DNA of 38,272 nt from Dimorphilus gyrociliatus (GCA_904063045.1 CAJFCJ010000121.1:1-38272), one strand, 5' to 3'; counted from the stretch's first letter, positions 3,549 to 38,272 are shown. The notes: generated from the sequence alone by a model not told the origin. Translations and numbers: made by a program.

Positions 3549-4147
3549 CTGTTGAAAAAATATTGTTAATAAAATTACATCAGCAACTTTAATTATTACT
3601 TAACTGTAATGATGTTATTCACTTCTCTCAGTGATCCTAAGAGTCCAAAATCTCAATTGAATATAAAGTCTATGGAAGAATACATTTTACTTTATATAAA
3701 ATGAATTATTTTTCTTTCTAACTGATAGATATTTTTATAAAATAAAAGTAAAGTTTTCAAGCTTGGTTTAAATTTTTCACTAAATGTTAAAATTGAAAAT
3801 ATTTAACTGATTAAAAAAGTACAAAATATATTGCTTTGTAAACTCTTAAACTAATTTTAACATATTCAAGATTTTCAACAAAAAAGAAATAAAATTCATG
3901 TGGGAAAGTGTATATGGAATAATCTCATTATACCAGATTACATTACATAACATATCAGTGTTATATAATTCCTATAAAACATTTAAATTCAATCTAAAAT
4001 TTTCATTTTGTGTTTGTAAGTTGATTATCTCACATCAATACATTTCACCATTTTAAAGAAGCAATTGAAAATTAAAGGATATCTGTGGTATCTATTTATT
4101 GTTACTCTTATATATAAATTATTGAATATTTTAATATTGCAGTGAAT

Positions 4148-5629: not shown

Positions 5630-6630
5630 GTACATTGTTAATTTAAGTAAATATGAAATTCCCAGAGATGTTGAGGAATTCTTAAATTTAGGTTTAAAGT
5701 TTACTTTTCACCAACAAAGTAAAAGCAATTGGCAAAAAATATCTACATTAAATTTAGAGGAATTTTTTAAAAGGTTGATTTTTGTTGATAAACATATTGA
5801 AGGTGAAAGTGAACCTTTAGTAAAAGATTGGAGACCAAAGAAACAAAAATCAGAATTAACACAATCATTTTCAAACATTTTTTTAGATGACTGTATAAAA
5901 GATTTTAAAATTGATTGTAAAAGGTATTTGAAACAATTTCAATTCAATAACATCAACAACCCTAAAAATAATAAAAACTTTAAACTCAACAATCAGACAC
6001 TAATGGAAAGTTTAAAATCATTTTTCTCATTAGACATTATAATAAAATCTTCTGACAAAGGATCATGCCTTGTTATTCAGAATAGAGAGGACTACTTAAA
6101 AATGTGCCAACATCTAATATCTGATGAAGAACAATATTGCCTTTTAACAAATGGACATGTTTTTACTAAACAAAATATTAAATACTATAAAGATCTACTG
6201 AAAAAGTATAAATATTGTATTGAAAGTAGTCACTTAAATGCACTATTGGACTCATTAAAAGATTGTAAACCAAGAAATTTCTATGCTCTTCCAAAAATTC
6301 ATAAGGAACAACAAACTGATTGGATTGTACCCTTTTCAATTCCAAAAGGCAGACCAGTAATTTCATGTTTAAATAGTGAAACTTATGAAATATCAAGATT
6401 TATTCACCATCTACTCTATCCAATAAGTAAACTTCATCCTTCTTTCATTGAAAATAGTACAGATATTTTACACCATCTTCAAGATTTAATAATACCAAAT
6501 GATGCCCTTCTAATTACAATGGATATAAAAAGTATGTTCTCTATAATTGATACACATTCTGGATTAAATGCTATTGAATATTTCCTTGAGAAATATTCAC
6601 CATTTGGAAAAGACAATCAGATATTCAAAG
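5595..6630 (+). pseudogene. Penelope-like reverse transcriptase, 3'-truncated
   Basis: The frame is open from 5595 with PLE motifs IVNLSKYEIP..FLNLGLKF, IKSSDKGSCLVI, FYALPKIHK, GRPVISCLNSETY and LITMDIKSMF (motif A). It runs into an AT-rich repeat before motifs B and C. Confidence 0.88.
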
Positions 6631-6631
6631 A

Positions 6632-7172
6632 ATTTATAATCAATACTTTTTACAGAACTCAATTCTCTCTTACAGTTCAAAAGTTATGGCACCATAAACT
6701 TTTCACTATTAAATATCATCTATACAGTTCATACAAAACATTTGTCATACAAAAAATAACTCTAATAAGATGTAGAACTTTCAAACTTGGTATAAAAATT
6801 ATAATTGGTACACTGATCACAAATCTTTTTACAGAATTCAATTATCTCTTATAGTTCAAGAGCTATGGTGTTGTAAAGTTTGGTTAATATTTTGGCATAA
6901 AAACTTATATAATAAATATTCATCATGTAAAAACTAACTTTGTTATTAATAAATGTACGAATTTGAAAATCGATATATAGCTCAATTTTGTTATGCTGAT
7001 GTCAAATCTTTTTACAGAATTCAATTATCTTTTGTGGTTCAAGAGTTATGGCACAGTAAAGTTTTGTCAGTATTTTGTCATTCAAGCCTATATAAGAAAT
7101 ATTCGTCATGTAAAAACTAACTTTGTTATTTGTAAATGTAGGAATTTGACATTTGGTATATAGCTCAATTTC
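6632..7172. repeat. ~180-bp AT-rich tandem repeat (core AAATCTTTTTACAGAATTCAATTATCT)
   Basis: The core recurs near 6645, 6826 and 7003, and again near 9960 and 10141 on the other side of the MULE insertion. Confidence 0.75.
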
Positions 7173-9936
7173 GAATTATGGAGAAAACGTCCACTGGAGA
7201 AAACGTCCACTGGAGAAAACGTCCACTGATTGGAGAAAACGTCCACTGGAGAAAACGTCCACTGGTTGGAGAAAACGTCCACTATGTGAAGAATATATTA
7301 AAAAATACTTTTTCAAATTTAAATTTTTATTATTGATTTTGAGATATATCCAATACATTCCCATAATGCAATCACTTTTGGTAGCCATTTTGAAATCCAG
7401 ACAGGAAACAGTTCTGGGATCTTCTATGTTTTTCATGGAAAGTGAATATTGTGCATATTTCATCTACAATTTTTCAGAATTTTTTGCAGTTTGAAATATA
7501 TTTCACTATTGAAAACCATCAGACAAAACACAAACTTTAGAATTGATATCAGTAAGTTATAGAATATTGTGTTGAAATGATTTATTTATAAATTAGCTTT
7601 ATTTTTATAGCAGCCATTTTGTTTATCATTATTGTTAATTGTTTAATTTTTAAATTTATACAGTTGGTTATTGATAGAGATTCCAAATTGAACTTGGCAC
7701 CAATTTGTTACATTTGTGAAGAGAGAATATATGGAAGACAAAATCAAGAGAAATGTCAGCTTTGCTGTCATTTATTTAAAATACATAAAAAATGTTTGGA
7801 TTATAAAGGTTTGTTTAAGTTTTTTGTCACTATCCTTCCTTACAAATATGTTTTTATATTTTTTCACAGATCAATCATTTTATTGTAACATTTGCTGTGA
7901 CATATCAATGAAGAAATGCATTGTTGCACTTCAAAGGCTACCTTCTAGTGCATCTGCTAATGAAGAAATAAGACAAACACCAAATTTTGATACAGCAAAT
8001 AATAGAAATGAGCAAACTATTGTTTGTGAAAATCATTGTGGAAATTCAAGTGGAAATGATACAAATGGCAGTATTATGGAATCACACAATGTTTTAGTTG
8101 AAGATCTTCCAGCTCAGCAAAATAATATGATGGAAGTTTCATTTATAGTTTCTCCAAAATCAGATTGTGAGAAAGAAAGTTATTCATTTAAAATCTTAAA
8201 GGGAATGAGCCAGAAAGGAAAAGATTTGCTACTTTTCTACAATTTCTGCTACAATATTAAAGAAAAAAGAAACAAGACAACATTCTCGATATGCAGTGTT
8301 AGGAACAAAAGAAACAAATGTTCAGCAACAGTTAGTCAGCATGGGAACAGTTTTTATCCTGGAAAGTTATCCCATTCTCATGAAAGAGTACCTGATTTGG
8401 AACAAAAAATAATGATTAGGAATGAACTAAAAAATGCTTGTAATAAAGATATCAGTAGTTCAGGAAAACATTTAGCTGAAGATGTTCTGGTGAAACATTG
8501 TAGTTCTGGTGAAGTTATTCCATCTCTAGATAATTGTACAAGACTGGCAAACTGGACAAGAAAGAAGTTTAGACCAGCTGAACCTCAAAGTATTCACTTC
8601 AACTTGGCTAAAACTTTTATTCCTGATGATTTTTTACAAATGGATATACAAATGGAGAATGATAGAATACTAATATTTTCAACTACAAAGCAAATTGAAT
8701 TATTATCTAAAGGCAAAATATGGTTTATGGATGGCACATTTAAATGTGTGAAAGACCCTTTTTATCAACTTTTTTCTATTCATGGATTTATAAAAAAAAA
8801 TGGAGAAATAAAACAAATTCCAATGGCTTTTGCTTTTATGGGATCTAAGAGAAAGACAGCCTACAAGAAATTATTTAAGGTACAATAATTTTGCATTTTA
8901 AATTGAATAATCTAATTTGTTAAATTAACAGGCAATACAAGATTTAACAAATGGGCATAGCCCCAAAAAAGTTGTTGTAGACTTTGAAAAAGCTATTTGG
9001 AAAGCACTATCATTCACTTATCCTGAAGCAAACATTAAAGGGTGTGTTTTTCACTGGACACAGGCAATATACAGAAAGATTCAAGTAATACTTTAATTTA
9101 GTATTTGAGGTCTAGATAGAACTGACATATTTATTTCCAGGAATTAGGATTATGTAAGATGTACAAGGAGAAAAAAGCTGAATATAGAATCATGAAGAAA
9201 TTAATGGCATTACCATTCCTGCCCTCTGATCTGATAGAACCAACATTTAAGACTATTAAAGAAATAAGTCCTATTGAAATGAAGTCTCTATTGGAGTACA
9301 TTGAGACACAATGGATAAATGGATTTTATAAACCAGAGGTATGGTCTGTTTATGGTGAGGCTATAAGGACAAATAATGATCTTGAAGGATGGCATCACAG
9401 GCTTAACAAGAATCTTTGCTCTAACACTGCATTCTATTTGCTTTTAGATGAACTGAAAAGAGAGGCTGATCTGATAAAGCTATATAAAAAATTACTGAGT
9501 GAAAAGAAAATTTGTAGACAGCAAAGAAAAGCATATCAGAATATTCAGAGCAAAATATTCAGCTTATGGGAACAATTTGAAATTGCCTCAATTACCTCCC
9601 TGGACTTACTTGATAAAGCTTCTGACATTTATTCACCAGTTTAAAATACCTTTATTCTTTAATGTTGTTACACTGTTGTCAATCATTCTTGTTATATTGC
9701 TTCTTTTTGCTTAATCAATATATTAATATTTAAATATTTGTAATTCTTATTATTCATTTTTTCCTGTCAAATTGCTCTAAAAACTCCATCTATCAAATAT
9801 CTTATATCTTACTTTGAAGTTTTATAATGGACGTTTTCTCCAGTGGACGTTTTCTCCAAGCAGTGGACGTTTTCTCCAAACAGTGGACGTTTTCTCCAGT
9901 GGACGTTTTCTCCAGTGGACGTTTTCTCCTGTACCC
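7173..9936 (+). mobile_element. Mutator-like (Phantom-type) DNA transposon, full length
   Basis: 9-bp TSD CTCAATTTC at 7164-7172 and 9937-9945, G...C termini, and inverted arrays of TGGAGAAAACGTCCAC at 7179-7283 and 9826-9929. Confidence 0.92.
7664..9644 (+). CDS. Spliced PHD-FLYWCH-MULE DDE transposase (start exon unresolved)
   Basis: Exons 7664-7808, 7870-8879, 8932-9084 and 9141-9644 join in frame through GT-AG introns. Motifs: C4HC3 PHD, FLYWCH-like, WFMDGTF, VVDFE, GCVFH, RTNNDLEGWH. Confidence 0.85.
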
Positions 9937-14068: not shown

Positions 14069-14974
14069 ATGAACAATAATTTTGGAAAATCTTTTGAGAC
14101 TCTTTTCAATAGTCATATTTTGAGTTATCCATTACTTGGAAATTTAAAAATTTATGAACACAAAAAGCTATATAACAGAATCAAACTTCACTTTGAGGAA
14201 TTTCAAGAGAATGTCAATACTGAGATCAAGAATTATTACAAAGAACAAATTGACTTAAATCAATTTTTTTATTTAAAACCTCTTCTTAAAACTCCTGCAA
14301 GTTGGGGACAAGTGGAGAATTCCTTACCATATGTCATTTATCAAGTACTAAAGACTAAACCCAATTGTATGGAGGGTGCTGAAATATTTAATGATGTAAT
14401 TGCTGAAATCAAAGAAATGTATTTTGATCAACTTGTTGAACCAGAAGTAAATGAACAACTCAATTCAACATTGATAATTGATAATCAAAACCAGAATGAA
14501 ACAAGCCATTTTGCACCCACATCAACTTCATCACCAATACCAATATCAAATGAAAATGAAAATGATAATGAAAATTGTAAAAAAATTAAAGATGCTAATG
14601 AAAGGTATTTTAATTTGGAAAACAACAATCATTTAGCAATTAGGTCTTTCAATTTTCTGGAAGAAATTGAAAGATTTTTTCCAAAAAGAAAACAAAGAAA
14701 AATTTTAAAAACATTTTGCCCCACAATGGATTTTTGTACAGAAACTGTAATTATATCAGACTATTTTACTGACATTAAAGTTCCAGATTTTAAAAAAATT
14801 TTTCAAAAAAATAATATTAAGAATGTTCAATTATTATTATTCAAAAAGTTATCATTCAATACTTTTCCATATTTGCTGGTTGAGTGGCCTTTAAAGGATA
14901 AAAAAATTATTGTCATTTTGAAAGAATATCCAAAGAAACTCAAATTTGAAATTGTTGACTTTTTAAAGTTATAA
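14069..14974 (+). CDS. Hypothetical intronless protein (301 aa)
   Basis: Long ORF in very AT-rich DNA with a helical N-terminus, Asn/Glu-rich linker and alpha/beta-like C-terminus. No domain recognised. Confidence 0.45.
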   Translation: MNNNFGKSFETLFNSHILSYPLLGNLKIYEHKKLYNRIKLHFEEFQENVNTEIKNYYKEQIDLNQFFYLKPLLKTPASWGQVENSLPYVIYQVLKTKPNCMEGAEIFNDVIAEIKEMYFDQLVEPEVNEQLNSTLIIDNQNQNETSHFAPTSTSSPIPISNENENDNENCKKIKDANERYFNLENNNHLAIRSFNFLEEIERFFPKRKQRKILKTFCPTMDFCTETVIISDYFTDIKVPDFKKIFQKNNIKNVQLLLFKKLSFNTFPYLLVEWPLKDKKIIVILKEYPKKLKFEIVDFLKL

Positions 14975-16640: not shown

Positions 16641-17371
16641 ATCCTTTTTATTTTTCAACCTAGCTTGCCTTGAAGTTTAGTGCATTTTCCTTCTAAAATT
16701 CATTATAAAAATTATTATGTTTTAAATAGGATATATTGAATTGATATAATGAATATATTTCTAAACAGTAATTTCAATTTTCTATTGCATTGAACTCTTA
16801 CAGTAAGTTCTCATACACAGACTTTGTTAGATTATCAGTTTTCTCACAGTTTACTAATTTCATGCTGTCACATATCTGTTAGCATTATATAATTTTATCT
16901 AAGCTGGATTAGCTTGTGGCATGTTCCCACAGGATTTTCCATGTGTCTTATATATAAGGTGAATATGTTTTCACAGAAATCATTTATAGTTTGAAGATTA
17001 AGGAGTCAGCATCACATTAAAAATAGCTGGTCTTATGAACAGCTTCTACAATTCCTTTCAAAATATACATCCTTCAATGATAGAATGGTATGTAGATATG
17101 TCATTAAACAGGAAAGTGTGTTATATATATTTGGAATGTTTTATTCACATGGTTCATATTTAGTTTGAAGAAGGAGTCAAAATCACATTTAAAATACCCA
17201 ATTAAATGAACATCCCCTACAATTGCTGATGATATTAAAATGGTATGTACAAATTCTGATATACAGTATCATAATACATAGCACTTTCAATATGATATAT
17301 ATTAAAAAAAGACCTGAAGAAGTGAATTCCCTATTGGAATCCTTCAACCTCTCTGTAGGTGTAGGTTAATA

Positions 17372-17428
17372 GACCCTGATGAGTCCTTGGTCATAAAAAT
17401 AGAGAGGAGGACAAAACCATGGTAGGTC
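17372..17428 (+). ncRNA. Type I hammerhead ribozyme with a core mutation (GAAA to AAAA)
   Basis: GACC CTGATGA GTCC..GGAC AAAA CCATGG TA GGTC; identical to 36737-36793 except for the core G to A change. Confidence 0.8.
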
Positions 17429-19538
17429 AAGTTGGTAGGAAAAAAATTTAAGAAAAAAATTTTTTCTGTTGGAAATTGTTTTAAATGTCGATTTTGGTGT
17501 ATTTTTTCTTTGACTGCTTCCCAAAATCAACTGGGACTCTTGAAATGTGAGAATCCTGTTTCTCTTTTTTGATTTAGTCAAAAAAAAACCCTTTGCAAAC
17601 CCCAACAAGTAAAGAGAATGTGGAATGAGAGGAACTAATACATAAACCTTAATCAATGACTAAAACAAAACTTTTTCCATAAGATTGACTTTTTTCAATT
17701 CAAAATTAAATTTTTTGACTTTAGCTTTCAAAATTTTTTCTTTTTACTTTAAAAAAGGGATAAAGATTCTTAAATATGTACCTGTGGTGTAATTAACATT
17801 TTTGGTAAATTGCTAGAGTTTGTTGTGTTGATAATGTCTTGCTGTTAAAACCAAATGATGAAATTCTTTAGAGTCAGTATACACTTATGGTGATTTTAAA
17901 TTTCTGATGGTAGTAGTAATATATCTTTGTACATTTTTGATTACTTTTGTAAAAGCTTGTATAGTTTTGTACATTTTTGTATTTTTTAAAATATTGCTTA
18001 AAATAAGTTGTTGATGTTTTTATCATGGTGATTTTAAATTTTCTCATGGTTTTAGCTTGAGTATGAGTTTTTGCTTGAGTATGAGTTTTAGCCTGAGTTT
18101 GAGTTTGTTTTTTAGTTTGATTGTGAGTTTAAATTAAAATTTGAGTTTAATTTGTGTATTAAACTGGTTTTAATTTGATGTAAATATGGTTAGTAGTTTA
18201 CAGATTTTTTTTGTGATCTTTATAAAGGTTTCTATATTCTTCCCAAATCTTTTACATTTCTAATATTTATAAAAATCCCCTATTGTAGTATATTGTAGAG
18301 AACATTTTAAATATTCTCAGTAACTAACCTTTATTCTTAAGCTAAAATTAAAAAAATACTTTTCTTATCAATCTACTTCCAGTATAAACACCACCATATT
18401 TGACATTAAAACATTTCACCAATTTTAATATCACTCACTTCAAAAACTCACATATATTCTCTTAATTTTTTCCAATCCATTCATTAGCCAAAACAATGAA
18501 TCATAACTGGCTCAAACAAATGAATGTTGGAAAAGACTCTTTCAACTACCAATACCATAAATTGTAATCTTAATTCACTACATGGAATAATCCTTCCATT
18601 CCAGTAACAAACATAAATCATAAATCAATAAAGGAATTAGGAACCTCTCTATTCAGCATACAAAACACTCTTCCCAATCCATTCATTAGCCAAATCAAAC
18701 TATCTGGAATTAACTAAATGAATGTTGGCAAGAAACTTTTACACACAAAAACAGATTACCTAAGGCTTTCACACATTTACTTACAAATGATTTATTTAAC
18801 CCACTTTCCAATCCATTCATTAGCCAGAACAACCTATCACTTGGCAAAGTAAATGAATGTTGGAAAATACAATACAAGAAAAACAGGTTAGTCTTCAAAC
18901 AATATTATTTAATAATTTGCAAATTAACAATCCTCTAATCTTTAGCCATAAAATTAAATTAACCATACTTTCTACATAATACAACATATGTATCACACTT
19001 CATTCATTTACACTCACTTATTTTATATACTTTCAATTAATTAACCAATTCCTTTACACATACTTAATTCATCAACTAGCCATAAATAATAATACAATTC
19101 ATACTTTTATTTTTTCACTTTTTCAATTTTGAATTTTTACTTTTATTAAAACTTTTATTGTTATTCCATTCCTGGTTGCTACTATTTACCCAACTTATTT
19201 TATTTTATTCTATATCACTTTTCTTATTTTTTAGGTCTGCAATTTTTGTTTTTTCTGTCTTTGCTGTTTTTCCAAACTGTCAGTATATATATCCCCTCAA
19301 TTTACTGTTATTTATTCCTTACACTCTGATTCAAGTCCATAGATGCTTTCTTTAATAACTTGTTAATTTAAAAAGTTTTAAACTATTTTGGTCTCTTATT
19401 TTAATTTTTAATTATTTTTTAATTTAATTCCAAATTTTACTCCACAAGAATCTTTATCAACAAACAAATAAATAAATCAAAAATCTAGAGAGAAACTTCT
19501 TATAAGATTCTCAAACCTCTCTGTCATGTAGCTCAGTA

Positions 19539-19599
19539 GACCCTGAAGAGTCCCAGGTTTAAAAATTTAGTAGAGAGGGGGACGAAACCAAGGTAGGTC
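19539..19599 (+). ncRNA. Type I hammerhead ribozyme (intact core)
   Basis: GACC CTGAAGA GTCCC..GGGAC GAAA CCAAGG TA GGTC; predicted cleavage after GUA at 19595. Confidence 0.88.
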
Positions 19600-19920
19600 A
19601 AGTAGGTAGGAAAAAAATTTAAGAAAAAAATTTTTTCTGTTGGAAATTGTTTTAAATGTCAATTTTGGTGTATTTTTTCTTTGACTGCTTCCCAAAATCA
19701 ACTGGGACTCTTGAAATGTGAGAATCCTGTTTCTCTTTTTTGATTTAGTCAAAAAAAACCCTTTGCTAACCCTAACCATTTATACATTTATAATACAACA
19801 AAGTACAAATACTTGCATAATTCATTTTATTAAATTTTTCAAAATTTTATTGTATTTCAGTGCACAAAAGAAAGCAATCGTTTTAGCACATTAGTATGAA
19901 ATGTTATCTTAGCCTCATTG

Positions 19921-21946: not shown

Positions 21947-22639
21947 TGTATAATGTTAATTAACATGTGTATATTTATGCATTTTATTGATAGTTTGAAT
22001 GTTATCTTGAAACTTTGGTTATATTTTACATGCTTGAACTCTATTATTTTATGCAACATATACATGTACATCTTAAAACCTACTCAAGAAAATGCTATAA
22101 CATTGGCCAAACATAAGTCTGATTAGTCAGCTTGAAGGCTCATCTTTAATTACCAATAAAGGTTTGGCCAAGTTATAATTTAATTAACTTGCCTAGGGTG
22201 TGGCCAAGTTATAATTCAATTAACCTTCCTAAATGTTCAACCTTGTAACATCCTGTTACTAAAGATAAATATGAACTACACATTTTGGCAACTGTAAAGT
22301 GATGATTGGATGTCAGAGGCAAACCTCAAAGTATATAAATCCTCACTATTCTCATTTGGCATGCAGCTTCCATCTGGACCCAAGGACCTGGGAAAATCAT
22401 CTGGAAACAACCTCTACTGGAACCATCCATCTACTCCTCAACATTAGAAGACAGTTTGGTAATTTGGCAACTTGCTTTTACAAACTATCTACTCTGCTAT
22501 CAAACTCTCATATTGTTACTTGCTTAAGTATTATTATTGGGAATAAACCGTTTTAATTTAAACATTTGTTTAAAGGTTGAGTAGAACCAGTACTGTTATA
22601 ACTTGCAAATGCATAGATTTTGCCAGCAAGAGCAGTACA
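21947..22639 (+). mobile_element. 5' LTR of the same family as 2400-3034
   Basis: TGTATAA...GTACA termini; matches the first LTR from 22011 onward; followed by a PBS. The exact 5' start is inferred. Confidence 0.85.
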
Positions 22640-22643
22640 AATT

Positions 22644-22661
22644 TGGCGCAGTCAACAGGAT
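22644..22661 (+). other. Primer-binding site, tRNA-Ser type
   Basis: TGGCGCAGTCAACAGGAT, 4 nt after the LTR, resembles the tRNA-Ser PBS TGGCGCAGTCGGTAGGAT of some insect gypsy-family elements. Confidence 0.75.
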
Positions 22662-22699
22662 AATATTTTGGTTTATTCAAAAGTTTTGAGAAAGTAAAT

Positions 22700-23334
22700 A
22701 TGGCAGAAGGAGGAAATGGAAATGCCACTGGGGCAGTTACAGACTCTAACCCTTCAACCCCAGCAACTCCAACAATTACAATTCAGCCAGCAGGAATGTC
22801 AGAAAGGCAACAAAGACTAATTGAAGACTATGATAGATTGGTGAGTGAAATGAAAAGAAATCGAATCACAATTCCAACAGATCATGGACATGGAACACAT
22901 CACCCAGCACAGAACCCAAATGTTGATATCACAACAGTTATTCAAGCATTAAGGGCTGCTTGGGACTGCCCTCAAAGAACTATTCTCAAGTTGTATGATG
23001 GAAGCAAGAGTGTTCAAAATTCAAGGAAGACTTTAATCAGGCATGTTATGCTTATGGTTGGATTGGTGAAGATGTTGTGAAAGCAAATCTTTTAGATTAT
23101 TTAACTGGTCCTGCAAAGGATTTGGTGTTGGCTCTGGATGGAGAGCCTACTGTGGAGGAAATATGGAAAGCCCTCCATGATGAATTTGATCTGGATCCTT
23201 TGGAGTATCAAGAGAAATTGCTTAACTTAAAGCAAATGAATGGCGAAAGTGTGGTTCAGTTTGTTAATAGAGCAAAGAAATTAATAAAGAGGTTTTCTCT
23301 GCCTAGACCATTTACTCAAATACATATTCTTTGA
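22700..23334 (+). pseudogene. gag: Retrotransposon gag, frameshifted and 3'-truncated
   Basis: Joining the two ORFs at CAAAATTC (near 23018) gives YDGSKSVQ-FKEDFNQACYAYGW..KANLLDYLTGPAKD..LKQMNGESVVQFVNR, which is Ty3/gypsy capsid-like. Confidence 0.75.
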
Positions 23335-23542: not shown

Positions 23543-24165
23543 AGGGTTAGAGTTAGGTCTTGGGGTTAGGGATTAGCACAATCAGTACAGACTGGTAATC
23601 CCAAAAGTGCACACACACTTATAACCCTACTCAGCCAATAACTAGCCCTATTAATTTTCATTCACTGTCAATTTCTCTCTGTATCTCCAATAGGAGATAA
23701 AAAACTACTATCCTGATCATCCCCCACCCAGCTATTGGCCATGGTGAGAATTGTGTCATTGCTGTTGTCCAGGCTCTCTATGTTATTCACAATAGAGAAT
23801 TTGTTTTGTGGTTTATTGAAGACTGTTTTAATATGCCACCATGGGGATGGCCAACATTCTAATAGATTCAGAGTGTTGGTATTGTCCTCTTGAGGTGGAC
23901 CTTCAGTTCTTCCCTTTACTATAAGGCTACCCAATGATATCCCCAGTTTCAAGGCAATAATAGGCCTAATCGCTTTCAGTGGACTGTCATCATTAAGAGC
24001 ACTCCAGTGGTCCTTAAGTATTCTATTTACTTTATACCAAGGACTTGGATGGTAGACCACTAGTGGTACTATAGTAGTACTGTAGCAACCATGATCCTCA
24101 TTTAAGCCATAAGGAGTAACTGTATTAGCCTCTTTGATGTACCTTGCTTCCAAAGTCTGTAGGGT
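23543..24165 (-). mobile_element. 3' fragment of a Penelope-like element (GIY-YIG end, 3' UTR, telomere-complementary tail)
   Basis: LQTLEARYIKEANTVTPYGLN is a PLE GIY-YIG C-terminal motif, followed by PLVVYHP..ILKDHWSAL..PIIALKLGISLGSLIV. The tail is CCCTAACCCCAAGACCTAACTCTAACCCT at 23543-23571. Confidence 0.72.
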
Positions 24166-25044: not shown

Positions 25045-25941
25045 ATGTTTAAGTATAGTTCAAACAGAACAAAGGAAGCAATAGATAAAACTATTGGAAC
25101 AACAATGAAAACCATTTGGAAAGGACTTGAACAATCATCAAGTACATTAAAATTTATTGATTTCCAGAAATGCTGTATGACAGAAAAAGATGGTCAAAAA
25201 CTTGGAAATCTCCTCAAAAAATGTTCTCAAATAGAAACAATAAGTTTATCAAAATGTTGGCATACCAAAGATGGATTTTTTAATATTTGTGATGGACTTG
25301 AAAAATCATCAAATACATTAAAATTTATTGATTTCAATGACTGTTGTTTGAATGAAGAGCAATGTTCAGCACTTGGAAATTTGCTCAAAAAATGTTCTAA
25401 AATAGAAACAATAAATATATCAAGAAGTTCAGATATCAGTAATGGATTTATTGCTCTTTGTGATGGACTTGAACAATCATCAAATACATTAAGGGTTTTT
25501 GATTTCAGTGGCTGCTGTTTGAATGAAGAGCAATGTTCAACATTGGGAAATTTGCTCAAAAAATGTTCTAAAACAGAAACAATAGATATATCAGGAAGTT
25601 GGTTTACAAGAAATGCAATTATTGCTATTTTTGATGGACTTGAACAGTCATCAGATGCATTAAAGTTTATTAATTTAAACTGTTGCTATTTAAATGAAAA
25701 GGAAAGTAGAGCACTTGGAAATTTTCTTAAAAAATGTTTTAAAATAGAAAAAATAAATTTATCAGGAAATCCATGTATGGGAAATGGATTTATTGCTATT
25801 TGTAATGGACTTAAACAATCATCCAATACATTAAGGCTTTTTGATATCAGTTGCTGTGATATGAATGATGAAGAGATTTCAAACCTGAAAAGTGTTTTTC
25901 CAAATGTTTGCTTAGCTGAAACATTCTCATTGGATGACTAG
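25045..25941 (+). CDS. RNI-like/NLR-type leucine-rich-repeat protein
   Basis: About five 56-aa repeats (TLKFIDF..CCLNEEQCSALGNLLKKCSKIETINIS..NGFIAICDGLEQSS) in a single exon. The N-terminus may lie in a missing exon. Confidence 0.8.
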   Translation: MFKYSSNRTKEAIDKTIGTTMKTIWKGLEQSSSTLKFIDFQKCCMTEKDGQKLGNLLKKCSQIETISLSKCWHTKDGFFNICDGLEKSSNTLKFIDFNDCCLNEEQCSALGNLLKKCSKIETINISRSSDISNGFIALCDGLEQSSNTLRVFDFSGCCLNEEQCSTLGNLLKKCSKTETIDISGSWFTRNAIIAIFDGLEQSSDALKFINLNCCYLNEKESRALGNFLKKCFKIEKINLSGNPCMGNGFIAICNGLKQSSNTLRLFDISCCDMNDEEISNLKSVFPNVCLAETFSLDD

Positions 25942-26249: not shown

Positions 26250-27314
26250 ACTTAGTAATGGCACCTGTTTGTATTAATTGTAATAAAAGATTTTATGGCA
26301 GACAGAGAAAGATGAAATGCAGTGACTGCCAAGATTATGTCCATGCCAAATGCATCAAAGGTCTGTCTCTTTATATGTTTTTATTAAATTATTCACTTTT
26401 ATCATTTTCAATTTAGAATCTGAAAGAGTATTTTGCAATAATTGTGCAGAAAAGTTCAGGATTGAAGAAATTACATGTTCACTTTGTCATCATATCTGTA
26501 AAGGTGATATTTACTATGTAAAAACATACATTTATTTAACTTTGCTTAATATTACAGAAATGAAAGATGATAAGTGTTCTTCATGCAAAACTTTGAGTGA
26601 AAGATATTGTCTCATTAGTTTATCAGATGTGATTAATGATGATCCCACTGTAAAAGCTGCTCTGAGTTGTACTCATAATAACATGGTTAAAGACAATTGT
26701 AGTCTTAATGAAATTAACAATACTTCTAATATGGAGGAAAATTTATTGCATGAAAATGAAACTGAAAATAATGAGAATACTGAAAGCTCAGACAAATTTC
26801 ATATTATTATTGGTGGAAGTCGAAAAGGGAAAGATATTTTGACCAACAATGGCTATGCTTTTAATATAAAGTCTAGAAGTGACAAGAGAACCATCTGGAG
26901 ATGTTCTGTTAGAAATAAGAATATTCAATGTCCAGTTATTATTCAACAAAAAGGAAATATTTTCATAAAGAGTAAACATGAACACAATCATAACAAAAGG
27001 AAAAGCCTTATTGTGAATATTTCTGCTAGAAAAGAATTGAGAGCAATCTGTAATGCAGACATCAGGTCATCTGGAAGAGCAATTGCTGAAGATCTATTAA
27101 TTAATTTAAATCAAAGTGAAAATAACCTACCAAAACTGGAAAATCTGAGGAGATTAGCTAATATCAATAGGCAAAAATCAAGGCCTAAAGAACCAAACGA
27201 AATTGATTTTGAACTTAATACAACATTTATACCAGATGATTTTCTTCAAAGTGATATTGTTGTAAGAAATCAAAGAGTTTTATTATTTGCTTCTAAGCAC
27301 CAGCTATCTTTATT
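26250..27314 (+). pseudogene. 5' half of a PHD-FLYWCH-MULE transposase
   Basis: CINC..C..C..HAKC PHD exon, FLYWCH (GSRKGKDILTNNGYAFNIK..WRCSVRNK..C..HEH) and FIPDDFL..VLLFASKHQLSLL. It stops at the TIR at 27315, before the DDE domain. Confidence 0.8.
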
Positions 27315-30300
27315 GGTTCAGGGACAGTTCGCCCCTGGACAGTTCGCCCCAGGACAGTTCGCGCCATTTTAGAGACAGTTCGCCCCATTTTAAGGGACAG
27401 TTCGCCCTATTTTAGGAGACAGTTCGCCCCATATGTTAAAGGATAGCTGACATACTTTTTTGCTCTTCTTTATAACTTTTGAAGATAAGATATGAGATAT
27501 AAATGATAAATGAATGATATTTAGTAATTCTATTTGTATTATCAAGATGGAAATAACTAAGAAAACAAGTACATGATGTAAAATGTAAAATGAAATGTTA
27601 TGCAATATTCAACTGAACTAAATGATTCAAAAGATCATCTAGACTAATTTCCCTCTTTTCAAACTTATCCCAGTAGCTGAAAATATCAAACTGTAGATAT
27701 GGTGTAGTGACATTTCGGCCCAGGACATTTCAGCCCACTTTGGGACATTTTGGCCCAGGACATTTCGGCCCACTTTGGGACATTTCAGCCCACTTTGGGA
27801 CATTTCGGCCCACTTTGGGACATTTCCGCCTAAAATATTTCACCCCATGTTAGAAAAATAACATTTTAGATTTTGAAAAGGCTATATGGATGGCACTTAA
27901 AGACCAGTTTCCTAATTCTGACCTTCAAGGATGCTCTTTTCATTTCAAGCAAGCAATTTTGAGAAACATTCAGGTAGATTAAACAATACTGCAAACAATT
28001 AAATATTCATAGGAAATTTTTTGTTAGAAACTTGGATACATTAATGATTATAAAGAAAATGAATATAAAGGGAAAATGTTACAAAAATTGATGTGTTTGG
28101 CCTATCTTCCAGCAAAATTTATTGAACAAAAGTTTTTTCAAATAAAAGAAGAACTTTGTGAAAAGAAATTCTTTTCAGATTTGCTTGATTATATTGAAGA
28201 AACATTTATTAAAAGCAGCATTTGGCCTCCTAAATTCTGGTCTGTCTATCAATTGGCTGTGAGAACAAACAATCATGTTGAGGCATGGCATTCCAGGCTT
28301 AACAAAAACTTGAACATGGATGAGAACTTGTATTCCCTCATAAAAGAATTAAGAAGAGAAGCTGAGTTAGTAGAGATCTTTGAAAAGTTATTGTCCGAGA
28401 AAAAGTTAAGAAAGATACAAAAGAAGAAGTATCAAGATTTACAATTCAAAATATTTCAGTTGTGGAGTAAATTTGAAGAAAGAGAACTGAGTTTGGATGA
28501 ATTATTGGATGGACTTGTACATTTAAATATTTTTTAAAAGTTAACATTTCTTACTCTGCATTTTTGTTATTGTATGTTATATCATTCTTTTACTGTTTTG
28601 AAATTGTTTCCTTTCTTATTGAAAAAATAAACATAATCCATCATAAAATGGAAAGTTATATTCTTGAATATTAATGCTCTAAAATGGGCCAAAATGTCCT
28701 GGGCCGAAATGTCCTGGGCCGAAAATGCCCCAAAGTGGGCCGAAATGTCCAAAGTGGGCCGAAATGTCCCAAAGTGGGCCGAAATGTCCAAAGTGGGCCG
28801 AAATGTCCAAAAAGTGGGCCGAAATGTCCTGGCCCCTGTAGATATTCATATTTTTTTCTCTGCATTTTCTTCAACTTTTTCTCAGATAGCTGTATCTTAT
28901 AAACTTGTACCAACTCTGCTTCCCTTGCCAGCTCTTGTACCAAATTATACAAATTTCCATTTGCTTGTAAAGATTTATTCAATCTTGAGTGCCATCCCTC
29001 AACATTGTTGTTTGTCCTCACTGCCAATTGATAGATAGACCAATACTTTTGCTTCCATATTTTGCTATTGATATATGTTTTTTCAATATAATCCAAAAGA
29101 TCACTGTACACATTTTCTTCCAACAGCTTCATCTTTATTTCATAAAACTTTGAAGTGATGAATTCTTGGGGCAGATAAGGTAGACACATCAACTTTCTTA
29201 GCATTTTTCCATAATGACTCTTCTCATTATAATCATTTATATAGCCAAGTTTCTAGTGTTATACAAAGTATGAGAGGTATATTAAAAAGAGTTAAACATC
29301 AAACTATACCTGTATATTTCGAAGGATTGATTGCTTGAAATGAAAACAACATCCTTGTAAGTCAACTCCTGAAAAAACTTGTGTTACTGCAGTCCAAAGA
29401 CCTTTCTCAAAATCTAAAACAACTTTTTGTAGTTTTCTGTCACTTATTAAACAATCTACCGCCTATGAATGAAAAAACAAACATTCATTTCTTTTAAGAT
29501 ATATATAATAATTTTACCTTGAAAACTTCAATGTAATGCTTCCTCTTCTTTCCACTCATTAAAATAAATAAAAGTGGAACTTGAAGATATTCACCATTGT
29601 TTTTAATGAAGCCATGAATAGAGAATAGTTGATAGAATGGCTCTTTAACCACTTTAAAAGTCCCATCAATAAACCATATTTTACACTTAGCCAACAATTC
29701 CAATTGATATTTAGTTCCAAATATGATGCTTCTATGTTTTTCGCCTTGTATGTCTTTTAAAAAGAAATTATTTGGGATCTGATCCATTTCTAGTTCAAAA
29801 AATAAGTTATCTGGGTGTTTTGGCTTTTGATTTTCTTTATATCTGTTTGCTGATCTTTTAATTGATTCAATTTGAGGCAAAGAATTAGCATTGTCTCTAA
29901 AGTCCATTGCAACATCTTCAGCCAATCTTTTTCCAGACCTTTCACTTCTTTCCAAAATGAGTTTCTTTAAATGTACTCTTGCTTTGATTCTTTGTTCCAG
30001 ACTCTTTTCATTATTAAAATGAGTATGATCTTTTTTCACAATGAATCTTGAACCTTTTTGGATAATGTATGTTGTACAGCTTTGTGTTTTTGATCTCTGA
30101 GTACATTTCCAAGTTTTAGATGTTTTTGTAGTATTCTTAATTGTGTATGAGAAGTTCTTATGTAATAAAATATCTTTTCCTTTCCTACTTCCTCCTTCTA
30201 TTATTTGAAAAGTATCAACATTTTCAGCATCAGAACTGACTTCCTGACTTTTATTGAATGAAATTTCATCATGTACATCAATTCTTCTTTCTTGATCATT

Positions 30301-31109
30301 ATCTGATGAATGACTTCTTCCTTCCTCATTTTCCACAAAGTTATTTTCAAAATCAAATGATAATGTTAACTGTAAGCAGAATTTCATGTTAATAATTGGA
30401 GAAAGATTAAGTTTAATACATCACCTGATTTTCTTCCTGAAAGGTTTTATTAACAGTAGACATATGTTTAGGACTACTTTTATCAAATCCATTTTCTTCC
30501 ATCATTTGATCTACTCTTCTTATTCTGATAACAACTTGTTGTTTTGTAATATTGAAACAATCAACACAATAATCAGCATCTGCTTTATAAAAAAATTCAT
30601 TGAAATAAATGAAAAAAAATAAATTTGATTACCTTTTGAGCACTTTTGGTGATAAAAGTGTTTACATAATTTGCATCTTATTTTTTGCTGATTCCAATAA
30701 AATTTCCTCATACAACACCAACAGGTTTTTAAATTCATTTTTACACCAATCAATTCAATAGTTAAACCAATCTCTGTAAAGTATCATTCAAAATAATAAA
30801 ACTTCATTTAATTCAAAAGACTTTTCCTTCAGAGGAACAGGAAATAGATTTGTAAAAAAATCTGGTAACAGTAACATTAATGAGGTATGTTTTGCTGAGA
30901 ATATCAAAGATATAAAAATAACAGTAAAATAACAAATAACAAAATGTAATAAGTAGAACATCACTCTTTCCCTGCTGAAATCTTGAAAGGGACAAAGTAT
31001 CCCTGAAATGGGGCGAACTGTCCCCCAAAATGGGGCGAACTGTCCCTAAAATGGGGCGAACTGTCTCTAAAATGGGGCGAACTGTCCAGGGGCGAACTGT
31101 CCTGACCCC
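27315..31109 (-). mobile_element. Mutator-like element with GGACAGTTCGCCC subterminal repeats; transposase interrupted
   Basis: Inverted repeat arrays at 27315-27430 and 31010-31109. The spliced PHD-FLYWCH-DDE gene runs on the minus strand from ~30750 to the stop at 27598 and is split by the 27701-28836 insertion. No TSD found. Confidence 0.8.
27701..28836 (+). mobile_element. Internally deleted MULE nested in the previous element
   Basis: 9-bp TSD TGTAGATAT at 27692-27700 and 28837-28845; GGACATTTCGGCCCAC arrays at both ends. It holds only the C-terminal transposase half (DFEKAIW..GCSFH..RTNNHVEAWH). Confidence 0.88.
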
Positions 31110-31350: not shown

Positions 31351-31830
31351 AGTAACAGGAATTCAGTCATGAATCAACCCTCTTAGTGAACAGGTCAAGT
31401 ATTACTTAAGGATACAGTTATATTATTCTTACAATTTGGTTCTATATCCCTCCCCCTTCAATTCTACATCTCTCTTCTAAGTGGCTTACCTGTACTTACC
31501 TACAACCCCACAGCAGGAAAGTACAATCCCATTAAAAGTTATTTGATAATACTTTGTTTGGAGTTTTTAAGACAATTTTATTTTTTTCACTCTACCAAAT
31601 GCATGACAATATTAGTTGTGATGAGTAGAGAAGTTGCTAAGTGAAATAGGTTGTAGCTTGATTTTAGATTGAAAAATGTTTAAAAAGAATAATTATTATT
31701 AGAAAAGTTAGAGTTGTTAAAAGTTAAATTCCTTCAAAAATGAGTAATTAAAAAACTCATTAACTTTATTAAATTAACTCTATAAGCAGTCCTGATGATC
31801 AACTGTCTAAGGATTAAGTAAGTATACTAG

Positions 31831-33701
31831 AAGTCATCTTCCTGGGCATCATCTCTATAGCAGTCATCTTCCTGGGGATCATCTCTATAGCAGTCATGTT
31901 CCTGGGGATCATCTCTATAGCAGTCATGTTCCTGGGGATCATATCCACAAAAGTCATCTTCCTGGGGATCATATTCACAAAAGTCATCTTCCTGGAGATC
32001 ATCTCTATAGCAGTCATCTTCCTGGGGATCATCTCTATAGCAGTCATGTTCCTGGGGATCATCTCTATAGCAGTCATGTTCCTGGGGATCATATCCACAA
32101 AAGTCATCTTCCTGGGGATCATATCCACAAAAGTCATCTTCCTGGAGATCATCTCTATAGCAGTCATCTTCCTGGGGATCATCTCTATAGCAGTCATGTT
32201 CCTGGGGATCATCTCTATAGCAGTCATGTTCCTGGGGATCATATCCACAAAAGTCATCTTCCTGGGGATCATATTCACAAAAGTCATCTTCCTGGAGATC
32301 ATCTCTATAGCAGTCATCTTCCTGGGGATCATCTCTATAGCAGTCATGTTCCTGGGGATCATCTCTATAGCAGTCATGTTCCTGGGGATCATATCCACAA
32401 AAGTCATCTTCCTGGGGATCATATCCACAAAAGTCATCTTCCTGGAGATCATCTCTATAGCAGTCATCTTCCTGGGGATCATCTCTATAGCAGTCATGTT
32501 CCTGGGGATCATCTCTATAGCAGTCATGTTCCTGGGGATCATATCCACAAAAGTCATCTTCCTGGGGATCATATCCACAAAAGTCATCTTCCTGGAGATC
32601 ATCTCTATAGCAGTCATCTTCCTGGGGATCATCTCTATAGCAGTCATGTTCCTGGGGATCATCTCTATAGCAGTCATGTTCCTGGGGATCATATCCACAA
32701 AAGTCATCTTCCTGGGGATCATATCCACAAAAGTCATCTTCCTGGAGATCATCTCTATAGCAGTCATCTTCCTGGGGATCATCTCTATAGCAGTCATGTT
32801 CCTGGGGATCATCTCTATAGCAGTCATGTTCCTGGGGATCATATCCACAAAAGTCATCTTCCTGGGGATCATATTCACAAAAGTCATCTTCCTGGGGATC
32901 ATATCCACAAAAGTCATCTTCCTGGGAATCATCTCTATAGCAGTCATCTTCCTGGGGATCATATCCACAAAAGTCATCTTCCTGGGGATCATATCCACAA
33001 AAGTCATCTTCCTGGAGATCATCTCTATAGCAGTCATCTTCCTGGGGATCATCTCTATAGCAGTCATGTTCCTGGGGATCATCTCTATAGCAGTCATGTT
33101 CCTGGGGATCATATCCACAAAAGTCATCTTCCTGGGGATCATATTCACAAAAGTCATCTTCCTGGAGATCATCTCTATAGCAGTCATCTTCCTGGGGATC
33201 ATCTCTATAGCAGTCATGTTCCTGGGGATCATCTCTATAGCAGTCATGTTCCTGGGGATCATATCCACAAAAGTCATCTTCCTGGGGATCATATCCACAA
33301 AAGTCATCTTCCTGGAGATCATCTCTATAGCAGTCATCTTCCTGGGGATCATCTCTATAGCAGTCATGTTCCTGGGGATCATCTCTATAGCAGTCATGTT
33401 CCTGGGGATCATATCCACAAAAGTCATCTTCCTGGGGATCATATCCACAAAAGTCATCTTCCTGGAGATCATCTCTATAGCAGTCATCTTCCTGGGGATC
33501 ATCTCTATAGCAGTCATGTTCCTGGGGATCATCTCTATAGCAGTCATGTTCCTGGGGATCATATCCACAAAAGTCATCTTCCTGGGGATCATATTCACAA
33601 AAGTCATCTTCCTGGAGATCATCTCTATAGCAGTCATCTTCCTGGGGATCATCTCTATAGCAGTCATGTTCCTGGGGATCATCTCTATAGCAGTCATGTT
33701 C
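31831..33701. repeat. 30-bp minisatellite with a 150-bp higher-order repeat
   Basis: Units ATCTCTATAGCAGTCAT(C/G)TTCCTGGGGATC and ATAT(C/T)CACAAAAGTCATCTTCCTGG(G/A)GATC in a 3+2 pattern, about 62 units, ending at the N. Confidence 0.95.
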
Positions 33702-33702: not shown

Positions 33703-34313
33703 GGGTTAGGTCTTGGGGTTAGGGTTTTAACGCCCTAGAGTAGCACTCTCACTTTCTCCGTGAGTGATACCCTTGGAAGGTTGCGTTCCACATTGAAGAA
33801 TAACTATTCTGAATGACGGCAGGTTAATCTCTTAAGAACTGGGACCCTGAATTGTCAATTAGACGTGATACAAGGACCGTTCCTCCGATTACGGGAACCG
33901 GATGAGATACACCCGCTCAACTCAGAAAATCGCATCCAATAAAGGAAAAATAAGGACTTTCGGTTTCGAGCATGGTGCATTGCGGGATTCGAACCCACGT
34001 CTCCTGATTACATGTCAGTTATGTTACCACTACACCAAATACCTCCATGACGAACCTACCATCCAGATCTTCCTTATAGGATTTGTCTTTGGCGTCTTAA
34101 CCAAGTAATCATTTCTTAATGATTATCAAGCAGATAATTATTCGACAGAGAACCTCAGAGCCTTCCAAGTCTTTCACCCCTGAAGATAGGATCTGGCAGG
34201 GTTAGGTCTTGGGGTTAGGGTTTTAACGCCCTAGAGTAGCACTCTCACTTTCTCCGTGAGTGATACCCTTGGAAGGTTGCGTTCCACATTGAAGAATAAC
34301 TATTCTGAATGAC
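33703..34313 (-). mobile_element. tRNA-containing SINE-like unit with a telomere-complementary 3' tail (one 496-bp unit plus a 115-bp partial copy)
   Basis: 33703-33817 is repeated at 34199-34313. On the minus strand both copies end in AAAACCCTAACCCCAAGACCTAACCC. CpG is retained. Confidence 0.6.
33973..34043 (-). pseudogene. tRNA-like sequence (Pol III A and B boxes)
   Basis: GGTATTTGGTGTAGTGGTAACATAACTGACATGTAATCAGGAGACGTGGGTTCGAATCCCGCAATGCACCA. D, anticodon and T arms fold, the acceptor stem is 5/7, and the loop CATGTAA lacks U33. Confidence 0.7.
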
Positions 34314-34494
34314 AGGGTTAGGTTTGCAAAGGGTTTTTTTTTTGACTAAATCAAAAAAGAGAAACAGGATTCTCACATTTCAAGAGTCCCAGTTGATTTT
34401 GGGAAGCAGTCAAAGAAAAAATACACCAAAATCGACATTTAAAACAATTTCCAACAGAAAAAATTTTTTTCTTAAATTTTTTTCCTACCTACTT

Positions 34495-34555
34495 GACCTA
34501 CCATGGTTTCGTCCCCCTCTCTACTAAATTTTTAAACCTGGGACTCTTCAGGGTC
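34495..34555 (-). ncRNA. Type I hammerhead ribozyme (intact)
   Basis: GACC CTGAAGA GTCCC..GGGAC GAAA CCATGG TA GGTC on the minus strand. Confidence 0.9.
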
Positions 34556-36736
34556 TACTAAGCTGCATGAAAGAGAGGTTTGAGAATCTTAATAAGAAGT
34601 TTCTCTCCAGATTTTTGATTTATTTATTTGTTTGTTGATAAAGATTCTTGTGGGGTAAAATTTGGAAATTAAATTGAAAAAAAATTAAAAAATTAAAATA
34701 AGAGACCAAAATAGTTTAAAACTTTTTAAATTAACAAGTTATTAAAGAAAGCATCTATGGACTTGAATCAAAGTGTAAGGAATAAATAACAGTAAATTGA
34801 GGGGATATATATACTGGCAGTTTGGAAAAACAGCAAAGACAGAAAAAACAAAAATTGCAGACCTAAAAAATAAGAAAAGTGATATAGAATAAAATAAAAT
34901 AAGATAAAATAAAATAAAATAAGTTGGGTAAATAGTAGCAACCAGGATTGGAATAACAATAAAAGTTTAAATAAAAGTAAAAATTCAAAATTGAAAGAGT
35001 GAAAAAAATAAAAGTATGAATTGTATTATTATTTATGGCTAGTTGATGAATTAAGTATGTGTAAAGGAATTGGTTAATTAATTGAAAGTATATGAAATAG
35101 GTGAGTGTAAATGAATGAAGTGTGATACATATGTTGTATTATGTAGAAAGTATGGTTAATTTAATTTTATGGCTAAAGATTAGAGGATTGTTAATTTGAA
35201 AATTATTAAATAATATTGTTTGAAGACTAAACTGTTTTTCTTGTATTATATTTTCCAACATTCCTTTACTTTGCCAAGTGATAGGTTGTTCTGGCTAATG
35301 AATGGATTGGAAAGTGGGTTAAATAAATTATTTGTAAGTAAATGTGTGAAAGCCTTAGGTAATCTGTTTTTGTTTGTAAAAGTTTCTTGCCAACATTCAT
35401 TTAGTTAATTCCAGATAGTTTGATTTGGCTAATGAATGGATTGGGAAGAGTGTTTTGTATGCTGAATAGAGAGGTTTAATTCCTAATTCCTTTATTGATT
35501 TATGATTAATGTTTGTTACTGGAATGGAAGGATTATTCCATGTAGTGAATTAAGGTTACAATTTATGGTATTAGTAGTTGAAAGAGTCTTTTTCCAACAT
35601 TCATTTGTTTGAGCCAGTTATGATTCATTGTTTTGGCTAATGAATGGATTGGAAAAAAAATTAAGAGAATATATGTGAGTTTTTGAAGTGAGTGATATTA
35701 AAATTGGTGAAATGTTTTAATGTAAAATATGGTGGTGTTTATACTGGAAGTAGATTGATAAGTAAAGTATTTTTTTAAATTTCAGCTTAAGGACAAAGGT
35801 TAGTTACTGAGAATATTTAAAATGTTCGCTACAAACTATATATTCAACCTAATAAAAATATACTACAATAGGGGATTTTTATAAATTTTAGAATTGTAAA
35901 AGATTTGGGAAGAATATAGAAACATTTATAAAGATCACAAAGAAATATGTAAACTACTAACCATATTTACATCAAATTAAAACCAGTTTAATACACAAAT
36001 TAAACTCAAATTTTAATTTAAACTTACAATCAAACTAAAAAACAAACTCAAACTCAGGTTAAAACTCATACTCAAGCAAAAACTCATACTCAAGCTAAAA
36101 CAATGAGAAAATTTAAAATCACCATGATAAAAACATCAACAACTTATTTTAAGCAATATTTTAAAAAAATACAAAAATGTACAAAACTATACAAGCTTTT
36201 ACAAAAGTAATCAAAAAAGTACAAAGATATATTACTACTACCATCAGAAATTTAAAATCACCATAAGTGTATACTGACTCTAAAGAATTTCATCATTTGG
36301 TTTTAACAGCAAGACATTATCAACACAACAAACTCTAGCAATTTACCAAAAATGTTAATTACACCACAGGTACATATTTAAGAATCTTTATCCCTTTTTT
36401 AAAGTAAAAAGAAAAAATTTTGAAAGCTAAAGTCAAAAAATTTAATTTTGAATTGAAAAAAGTCAATCTTATGGAAAAAGTTTTGTTTTTAGTCATTGAT
36501 TAAGGTTTATGTATTAGTTCCTCTCATTCCACATTCTCTTTACTTGTTGGGGTTTGCAAAGGGTTTTTTTTTGACTAAATCAAAAAAGAGAAACAGGATT
36601 CTCACATTTCAAGAGTCCCAGTTGATTTTGGGAAGCAGTCAAAGAAAAAATACACCAAAATCGACATTTAAAACAATTTCCAACAGAAAAAATTTTTTCA
36701 AAAAATTTTTTTCTTAAATTTTTTTCCTACCTACTT

Positions 36737-36793
36737 GACCTACCATGGTTTCGTCCTCCTCTCTATTTTTATGACCAAGGACTCATCAGGGTC
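36737..36793 (-). ncRNA. Type I hammerhead ribozyme (intact)
   Basis: GACC CTGATGA GTCC..GGAC GAAA CCATGG TA GGTC on the minus strand. Confidence 0.9.
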
Positions 36794-37487
36794 TATTAAC
36801 CTACACCTACAGAGAGGTTGAAGGATTCCAATAGGGAATTCACTTCTTCAGGTTTTTTTTTAATATATATCATATTGAAAGTGCTATGTATTATGATACT
36901 GTATATCAGAATTTGTACATACCATTTTAAAATCATCAGCAATTGTAGGGGATGTTCATTTAACTGGGTATTTTAAATGTGATTTTGACTCCTTATTCTT
37001 CAAACTAAATATGAACCATGTGAATAAAACATTCAAAATATATATAACACACTTTCCTGTTCAATGACATATCTACATACCATTATATCATTGAAGGATG
37101 TATATTTTGAAAGGAATTGTAGAAGTTGTTCATAAGACCAGCTATTTTTAAGGTGATGTTGACTCCTTAATCTTCAAACTATAAATGATTTCTGTGAAAA
37201 AAACATTTATAATATATATAAGACACATGGAAAATCCTGTGGGAACATGCCATAAGCTAATCTGGCCTAGATAAAATTATATAACACCAATGTGGAAACA
37301 TGAAGTTAGTTAGTAAACTTTAAAATCACTGATAATCAAATTAAATCTGAGTGTGAGAAAGTTCTACAAACATGTTAAAGAGAGATAAGAGTTTGTTGTA
37401 ACTTGATATCAGCATTATAGTATTAGTGTATGTACTGAATTTCAAATCTCTATCTTAATTAACAACAATTAGTCAATAAACTGCAGT

Positions 37488-38272
37488 TTGGGTTAGGTTA
37501 GGGGTTAGGGTTAGGTTTAGGGTTAGGGTTAGGGTTAGGGTTAGGGTTAGGGTTAGGGTTAGGGTTAGGGTTAGGGTTAGGGTTAGGGTTAGGGTTTAGG
37601 GTTAGGTTAGGTTAGGGTTAGGTTAGGGTTAGGTTAGGGTTAGGTTAGGGTTAGGTTAGGTTAGGGTTAGGGTTAGGTTAGGGTTAGGTTAGGGTTAGGG
37701 TTAGGTTAGGGTTAGGGTTAGGTTAGGGTTAGGGTTAGGTTAGGGTTAGGGTTAGGTTAGGGTTAGGGTTAGGTTAGGGTTAGGTTAGGGTTAGGGTTAG
37801 GTTAGGGTTAGGGTTAGGGTTAGGTTAGGGTTAGGGTTAGGGTTAGGTTAGGGTTAGGGTTAGGTTAGGGTTAGGTTAGGGTTAGGTTAGGGTTAGGGTT
37901 AGGTTAGGGTTAGGTTAGGGTTAGGGTTAGGGTTAGGTTAGGGTTAGGGTTAGGTTAGGGTTAGGGTTAGGGTTAGGGTTAGGTTAGGGTTAGGGTTAGG
38001 GTTAGGTTAGGGTTAGGGTTAGGGTTAGGGTTAGGGTTAGGGTTAGGTTAGGGTTAGGGTTAGGGTTAGGGTTAGGTTAGGGTTAGGGTTAGGGTTAGGG
38101 TTAGGGTTAGGGTTAGGGTTAGGTTAGGGTTAGGGTTAGGGTTAGGGTTAGGTTAGGGTTAGGGTTAGGGTTAGGGTTAGGGTTAGGGTTAGGGTTAGGG
38201 TTAGGTTAGGGTTAGGGTTAGGGTTAGGGTTAGGGTTAGGGTTAGGGTTAGGGTTAGGGTTAGGGTTAGGTT
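37488..38272 (+). repeat. Telomeric repeat array, mixed TTAGGG/TTAGG
   Basis: A continuous G-strand array runs to the end of the window. Confidence 0.97.

Follow-up and report, generated by a model that had tools for sequence, protein, structure and literature searches.

A co-oriented stack of non-coding Penelope-like element derivatives at a telomere-bearing contig tip of the annelid Dimorphilus gyrociliatus

How does a contig end that is capped by telomere repeats come to carry a stack of non-coding modules, all of which face the same way? The question is raised by contig C121 of the 77.9-Mb, 349-contig assembly of Dimorphilus gyrociliatus (C-numbers denote contigs or scaffolds of this assembly). 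The whole contig, 38,272 nucleotides, constitutes the window analysed here. From its sequence it had been predicted that the tip is a head-to-tail stack of four retro-added modules. The co-oriented stack is real, and it comprises about two insertions, not four. The features of the window needed for the argument are listed below; A, B and C denote coding families of Penelope-like elements (PLEs).

33702, no strand: single N dividing the 30-bp satellite from the first tail; a putative junction
33703-34198, minus: 496-nt non-coding unit; its 3' tail, 33703-33724, has exactly the sequence of the family C tail (a coding family)
33973-34045, minus: tRNA-like piece (Rfam tRNA, 43 bits; ARAGORN, Thr-TGT)
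34199-34313, minus: exact repeat of the unit's 3'-terminal 115 nt, interpreted as an upstream pseudo-LTR that belongs with the unit to one insertion
34315-34580, minus: 3' pseudo-LTR of the hammerhead element, with tail, hairpin and type I hammerhead (34495-34555)
35255-35657, no strand: three hairpins of ~65 nt (near 35255, 35390 and 35594) with one nearly invariant arm of ~20 nt and variable loops
36238-36302, minus: box C/D-like unit with C, C' and D boxes and a 4-bp terminal stem
36546-36819, minus: upstream pseudo-LTR, 88% like the 3' pseudo-LTR, with a second hammerhead (36737-36793)
36820-37490, minus: the composite's 5' extension, which breaks off at 37490 here and goes on in other copies
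37491-38272, plus: telomere array of 97 TTAGGG units, 35 TTAGG units and 3 others
16808-19777, plus: internal inverted copy of the hammerhead composite, 94%, its 3' end without a telomere array
23546-24165, minus: internal fragment of coding family C, in which the end of a GIY-YIG ORF runs into a tail of the same type

Most of the predicted boundaries hold. The 496-bp unit, its 5'-truncated copy (100% identical to the unit's 3' end), the hammerhead element from 34314/34315 and the terminal telomere array, which runs from about 37490 to the contig end, all lie where they had been placed. RNA sense is minus, as indicated by the tRNA-like piece, by both hammerheads and by the coding partners, whose tails lie at 3' ends; thus, 5' ends do point toward the telomere. 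The telomere-like start on the plus strand that was ascribed to every module, GGGTTAGG, is present at 33703, 34199 and 34315, but the internal pseudo-LTR (~36548) starts without it. Four independent additions are rejected, because the '~115 bp' next to the telomere, listed separately in the prediction, is part of the hammerhead composite, other copies of which run through 37490 and beyond, and because the 115-bp copy reads as a pseudo-LTR. The longest stop-free stretch in the stack does not exceed 91 aa.

At the inner boundary, the satellite and the first tail would meet in a shared GGG if the N stood for two letters. The satellite (31828-33701) shows a higher-order periodicity of 150 bp, both of its strands contain open frames, and a 40-nt probe from it matches C121 alone. 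At the outer boundary, the mix of TTAGGG and TTAGG units recurs in the arrays on C27, C162 and C251; it is either a real mixed repeat or a product of homopolymer errors.

Elsewhere, the window contains two 630-bp LTR-like repeats (97%), within 1085-3034 and 22011-23080, the first preceded by a 427-aa ORF with a predicted membrane anchor and the second followed by a gag-like ORF. MULE/FLYWCH-like transposase fragments lie between short inverted tandem repeats at 7179-9929 and 26350-31102, and a single-exon leucine-rich-repeat ORF with 171-bp repeats lies at 25045-25941.

The first insertion is tied to family C at both of its ends. Besides the identical 22-nt tail, a short motif before the tail also aligns, and 9 of the 11 letters that follow the upstream tail, at the unit's 5' start, are identical to the start of family C (P about 2e-4, a post hoc observation). 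Thus, the joint at 34198/34199 mirrors the natural head-to-tail joint of family C. The unit and the 115-bp copy are probably one partial-tandem insertion with the 115 bp as upstream pseudo-LTR; partial tandems are a standard PLE form (PMC3846280). The variable 5' truncation expected of such modules is found as well: copies of the unit have a common 3' end and stop at 96, 115, 139, 193, 342 or 496 nt, older stubs having 76-88% identity. From these shared ends, the unit appears to depend on the endonuclease-bearing family C.

The tRNA-like piece within the unit has an A in place of U33 and an imperfect acceptor stem. It is internal, with a 153-nt leader before it, and sits at the tip of a longer hairpin (33940-34080) in which the leader pairs with sequence past the tRNA-like piece. 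The helix below the piece contains a purine-rich 4x4 internal loop, which we take to recall the loop E motif. Folding of the unit distinguishes the strands, with a z of -3.9 for minus versus -1.0 for plus. Given the runs of T5 (33950) and T4 (33929) that follow the tRNA-like piece, Pol III transcription from that piece would be expected to terminate without reaching the tail.

Several other identities for the unit were considered. A plain SINE was rejected for the leader before the tRNA and the T-runs after it, leaving aside the copy on C227, a single case that starts at tRNA position 1 to 3. Processing or chance microhomology would each suffice to explain that copy. At the same junction (L002:1480-1510) a telomere-like stretch of opposite orientation abuts the 5' end of the unit, an arrangement that would result if the two sides of a break had each been extended before being joined. 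No hammerhead was found in the unit, and a hammerhead with the tRNA in stem II was rejected, since the CUGANGA core is disrupted, although the 3' half matches. Telomerase RNA was also considered; the repeat-like stretch is at the extreme 3' end, and the copies are retro-like. Pattern searches for a host source of the tRNA piece matched only the two element copies.

The second insertion, the hammerhead composite at 34315-37490, consists of a pseudo-LTR, a 2-kb body, a second pseudo-LTR and a 5' extension. Its inner junction between pseudo-LTR and body is common to other copies, including diverged ones, which argues that the whole composite is a mobile unit. The upstream repeat continues into different sequence. 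Copies on C53, C35, C134, C125, C114, C101 and C162 match through 37490 and on, and six of the seven agree for 0.7-1.2 kb. Judged from these alignments, the composite on C121 is simply cut at 37490 and then capped by telomere repeats. Telomere-capped 5' truncation is established for PLEs (PMC3846280, PMC6431247). The last letters before 37490 resemble one telomere repeat.

Both hammerheads of the composite are of the minimal type I with a palindromic stem III. They lie 2242 nt apart (2.24 kb between cut sites), and the predicted cut of the 3' hammerhead, at 34498/34499, lies 184 nt away from the end of the tail. All six aligned copies have intact cores and stems; 8/8 stem pairs hold in them, one of them compensatory with both sides changed. 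Self-cleavage is putative, as the Rfam scores of both fall below the cut-off and the cores are intact by sequence alone. The hammerhead core is shared with coding family A, and the tail is more like that of family B; these resemblances seem to point to different families as the driver of the composite.

Other RNA-like motifs within the composite are also conserved. The three hairpins are kept in diverged subfamilies, and the near-invariant arm has 56 genome matches, most of them clustered at loci of the hammerhead family. In three diverged subfamilies, the box C/D-like unit keeps its C, C' and D boxes and its terminal stem while its interior varies; its arrangement was equalled in 11 of 2000 shuffles, and its Rfam matches are below the cut-off. 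An autonomous master continuing past 37490 was sought on C53; the continuation there consists of repeats and an ORF that is not an RT, and another element breaks into it. A 301-aa ORF of the window (14069-14974), with no Pfam family, is 36% like a 406-aa ORF on C53. Each ORF lies upstream of, and co-oriented with, a hammerhead composite, and the two are possibly cargo of a longer unit.

The coding relatives of the modules carry telomere-like tails downstream of their ORFs. Family C, on C59, has an ORF1 of 334 aa and an RT+GIY-YIG ORF of 883 aa in a 5.53-kb tandem. Besides this extra ORF1, which family B has as well, family B carries an ORF3; both families keep the GIY-YIG motifs, and the endonuclease of family A looks decayed. 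In other samples, relatives of families B and C (L051, L052) have a tail-like stretch before ORF1. On C162, a full family B element with an intact-looking GIY-YIG has its 5' end to the telomere. The exact family C tail occurs 48 times in the genome, 21 and 27 times per strand, and only two of the 48 lie on scaffolds C1-C26. Thus, many 'internal' copies may be subtelomeric, on small unplaced scaffolds.

Family A is represented in the window at 3207-6660 by an element cut off inside the RT and 99.6% identical to a copy on C101. In the C101 copy the RT frame runs on through the decayed endonuclease, and the 3' part reads N. On C3 (L040:1-5870), a 698-bp tandem array with one hammerhead per unit ends in telomere repeats; this array is a retrozyme-like relative of family A.

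Other contig ends carry the same modules in the same polarity, as the original prediction required. At all four telomere-bearing ends examined (C121, C27, C251 and C162), every module match is co-oriented and the end is capped by telomere repeats. At several truncation points, 1-3 letters are common to the module and the repeat added to it. The predicted alternation of modules with telomerase-type repeats is absent from the C121 stack, which has only the elements' own tails between modules. It is found at the C27 and C251 ends, where repeat runs separate modules and stubs as short as about 20 nt lie within the array. Of the long internal arrays, those on C22, C23 and C14 mostly have module stubs next to them, and one on C5 abuts DNA without modules. 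Modules also occur away from contig ends, on both strands, as in the inverted copy at 16808-19777. Inside C23 (755867-758714), two telomere arrays face each other, the result of either an end-to-end fusion or a mis-join.

The genome also contains a TERT gene, which the original prediction had proposed to look for. On C10, a TERT RNA-binding domain passes the Pfam threshold, and an exon-by-exon reading of the exons after it finds the T, A, B' and C motifs. Telomerase activity may be presumed from the gene.

Support for the joints was checked in the assembled contigs of four runs, all DNA, with sequence outside the satellite, the N and the telomere array as query. Contigs of a run made for a different study contain two joints of the C80/C53 stack (hammerhead stub to unit tail, and unit at 193 nt to the next tail); thus, such joints exist outside the assembly. 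Among the contig pieces listed from the four runs, the junctions of C121 itself are unbridged. Positions 34045-34187 have no depth in any of the four runs and are single in the assembly, which may reflect a rare allele or a filter effect. Misassembly, or a rare allele among the pooled animals, is a very unlikely source of the module order on C121. The N at the left boundary, the empty interval and the older PacBio chemistry behind the assembly (PMC7854359) are consistent with such an origin. However, the same kinds of joints occur on C114, C80, C53, C27 and C251, rare variants are dropped by Logan contigs, and a chimera would give neither a leader that pairs beyond the tRNA nor a start that mimics family C.

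The C121 stack probably arose when non-autonomous PLE RNAs were reverse-transcribed onto a free 3' end of DNA, tail-primed in trans and twice over, with telomerase capping afterwards. The 3' tail of the RNA, a reverse complement of a telomere-like repeat, would pair with the G-rich end, and an RT provided in trans would extend the DNA. In the first step, the 496-nt unit and 115 nt of the preceding 3' end, about 1.2 monomers, would be copied from a template that was tandem, pseudo-LTR-initiated or circular, most likely by the intact family C RT-endonuclease. The new end would next prime synthesis on the hammerhead composite, of which 3.2 kb would be copied; finally, telomerase would cap the truncated end. 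Retro-addition of non-autonomous RNAs with Athena/Terminon polarity had been proposed originally, and it is supported by the fixed 3' tails, the variable 5' ends, the agreement of the four ends, the coding PLE partners and TERT. Some of the subtelomeric spread could have come about by recombination. Free-end extension is to be weighed against endonuclease-driven serial insertion into the telomere-like repeats of an existing array, which would accord with the GIY-YIG motifs kept in families B and C, with the many internal copies and with several 3' ends that adjoin short repeat runs. Serial insertion is nonetheless unlikely: no telomere array lies inward of or between the C121 modules, no target-site duplication was seen in the flanks inspected, and 5'-truncated stubs capped directly by repeats are explained more simply by end extension.

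A separate issue is what the modules do for the worm. The originally proposed 'hybrid system of end maintenance', if understood as a dedicated one, found no support in the tests made: all four ends are capped by repeats, TERT motifs are present, modules on both strands lie away from ends, and a GIY-YIG endonuclease is retained by the family that probably drives the 496-nt unit. The modules lie within all four terminal arrays examined and beside most long internal ones, few exact family C tails are found on C1-C26, and the conservation of the non-coding RNA motifs points to selection acting at the RNA level, all of which would suit a co-opted, needed second arm of telomere maintenance. Such a role is improbable, however, since in addition to the points above the long C5 array directly joins non-module DNA, and selfish elements would also be expected to conserve RNA motifs. 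We hold similarly little confidence in a variant in which the modules, as non-coding RNPs directed to telomeres and driven by endonuclease-bearing PLEs, would be needed to back up telomerase and would use host RNA handles (the box C/D unit, the tRNA-like fold and the miRNA-like hairpins) for processing, stability or localisation. Nothing in the analysis shows that the worm needs the modules, and a TERT gene is also present. The best reading is that the elements are telomere-targeting parasites or accessories beside telomerase that also land away from ends.

Attachment to telomeres via a reverse-telomere tail has been tied to endonuclease-less PLEs, and Terminons have been described from rotifers (PMC6431247, PMC8557442). 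Here, non-coding derivatives appear to attach in an annelid with telomerase, one of them apparently dependent on an endonuclease-bearing family, which blurs the division between PLEs with and without endonuclease. In the limited literature searched, no tRNA-containing PLE dependant that shares both ends with its driver was found, nor was any paper on D. gyrociliatus and Penelope. What C121 contributes is the two-insertion reading, the two-ended match between the tRNA unit and family C, and the conserved C/D and hairpin motifs. Because the worm can be cultured and the templates are short, a direct test of PLE RT priming on telomere ends is possible.

In Drosophila, a genus that lacks telomerase, HeT-A, TART and TAHRE are non-LTR elements of the Jockey clade that end in poly(A). 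Their likeness to the C121 stack, included in the original prediction, extends to polarity and head-to-tail stacking only; the modules here are PLE derivatives without poly(A) ends, beside TERT on C10. Like tRNA-derived SINEs and the tRNA-bearing TRIMs Helenus and Ajax (PMC10886601), the 496-nt unit is a short non-coding element with a tRNA-like piece containing A/B-box-like motifs, and it likewise borrows its 3' end from an autonomous partner. Unlike them, it has its tRNA internal behind the leader, T-runs after it, a PLE as partner and few copies. The modules fit non-autonomous PLE derivatives in having a pseudo-LTR or partial tandem (terminal repeats of 115 nt and ~270 nt) and 3' likeness to an autonomous PLE of the same genome (the unit to family C, the composite's hammerhead core to family A). 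With non-LTR retrozymes (10.64898/2026.07.22.740005) and MRC1 (PMC8557442), the stack shares a non-coding nature, type I hammerheads in repeated ends and 3' likeness to autonomous PLEs. The retrozymes, however, are tandems of short monomers with one hammerhead each, whereas the composite has widely spaced cut sites, a telomere tail and a mobile unit that spans both hammerheads.

Partners B and C resemble endonuclease-bearing PLEs of the Neptune/Nematis type (PMC8557442) and differ from them by their additional ORFs and by telomere-complementary tails, which that work describes for endonuclease-less clades; the RT tree of relatives of B and C comprised unnamed rows only. The closest parallel is with the Athena/Terminon PLEs of bdelloid rotifers (PMC6431247, PMC8557442), and for these the predicted match in polarity holds. 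In both, 5' ends lie toward the telomere in head-to-tail chains, the 3' tail is reverse-telomere (short and variant in D. gyrociliatus), a hammerhead lies in the pseudo-LTR, and 5' truncations are capped by repeats. The Athena/Terminon hammerhead, however, is adjacent to the tail, and the 496-nt unit has none; those elements encode an endonuclease-less RT, whereas the D. gyrociliatus modules encode nothing and their likely driver has an RT fused to an intact-looking C-terminal GIY-YIG, in an annelid host. Thus, the C121 stack probably works like Athena/Terminon but, lacking an RT and with its hammerhead 184 nt from the tail, is not a Terminon.
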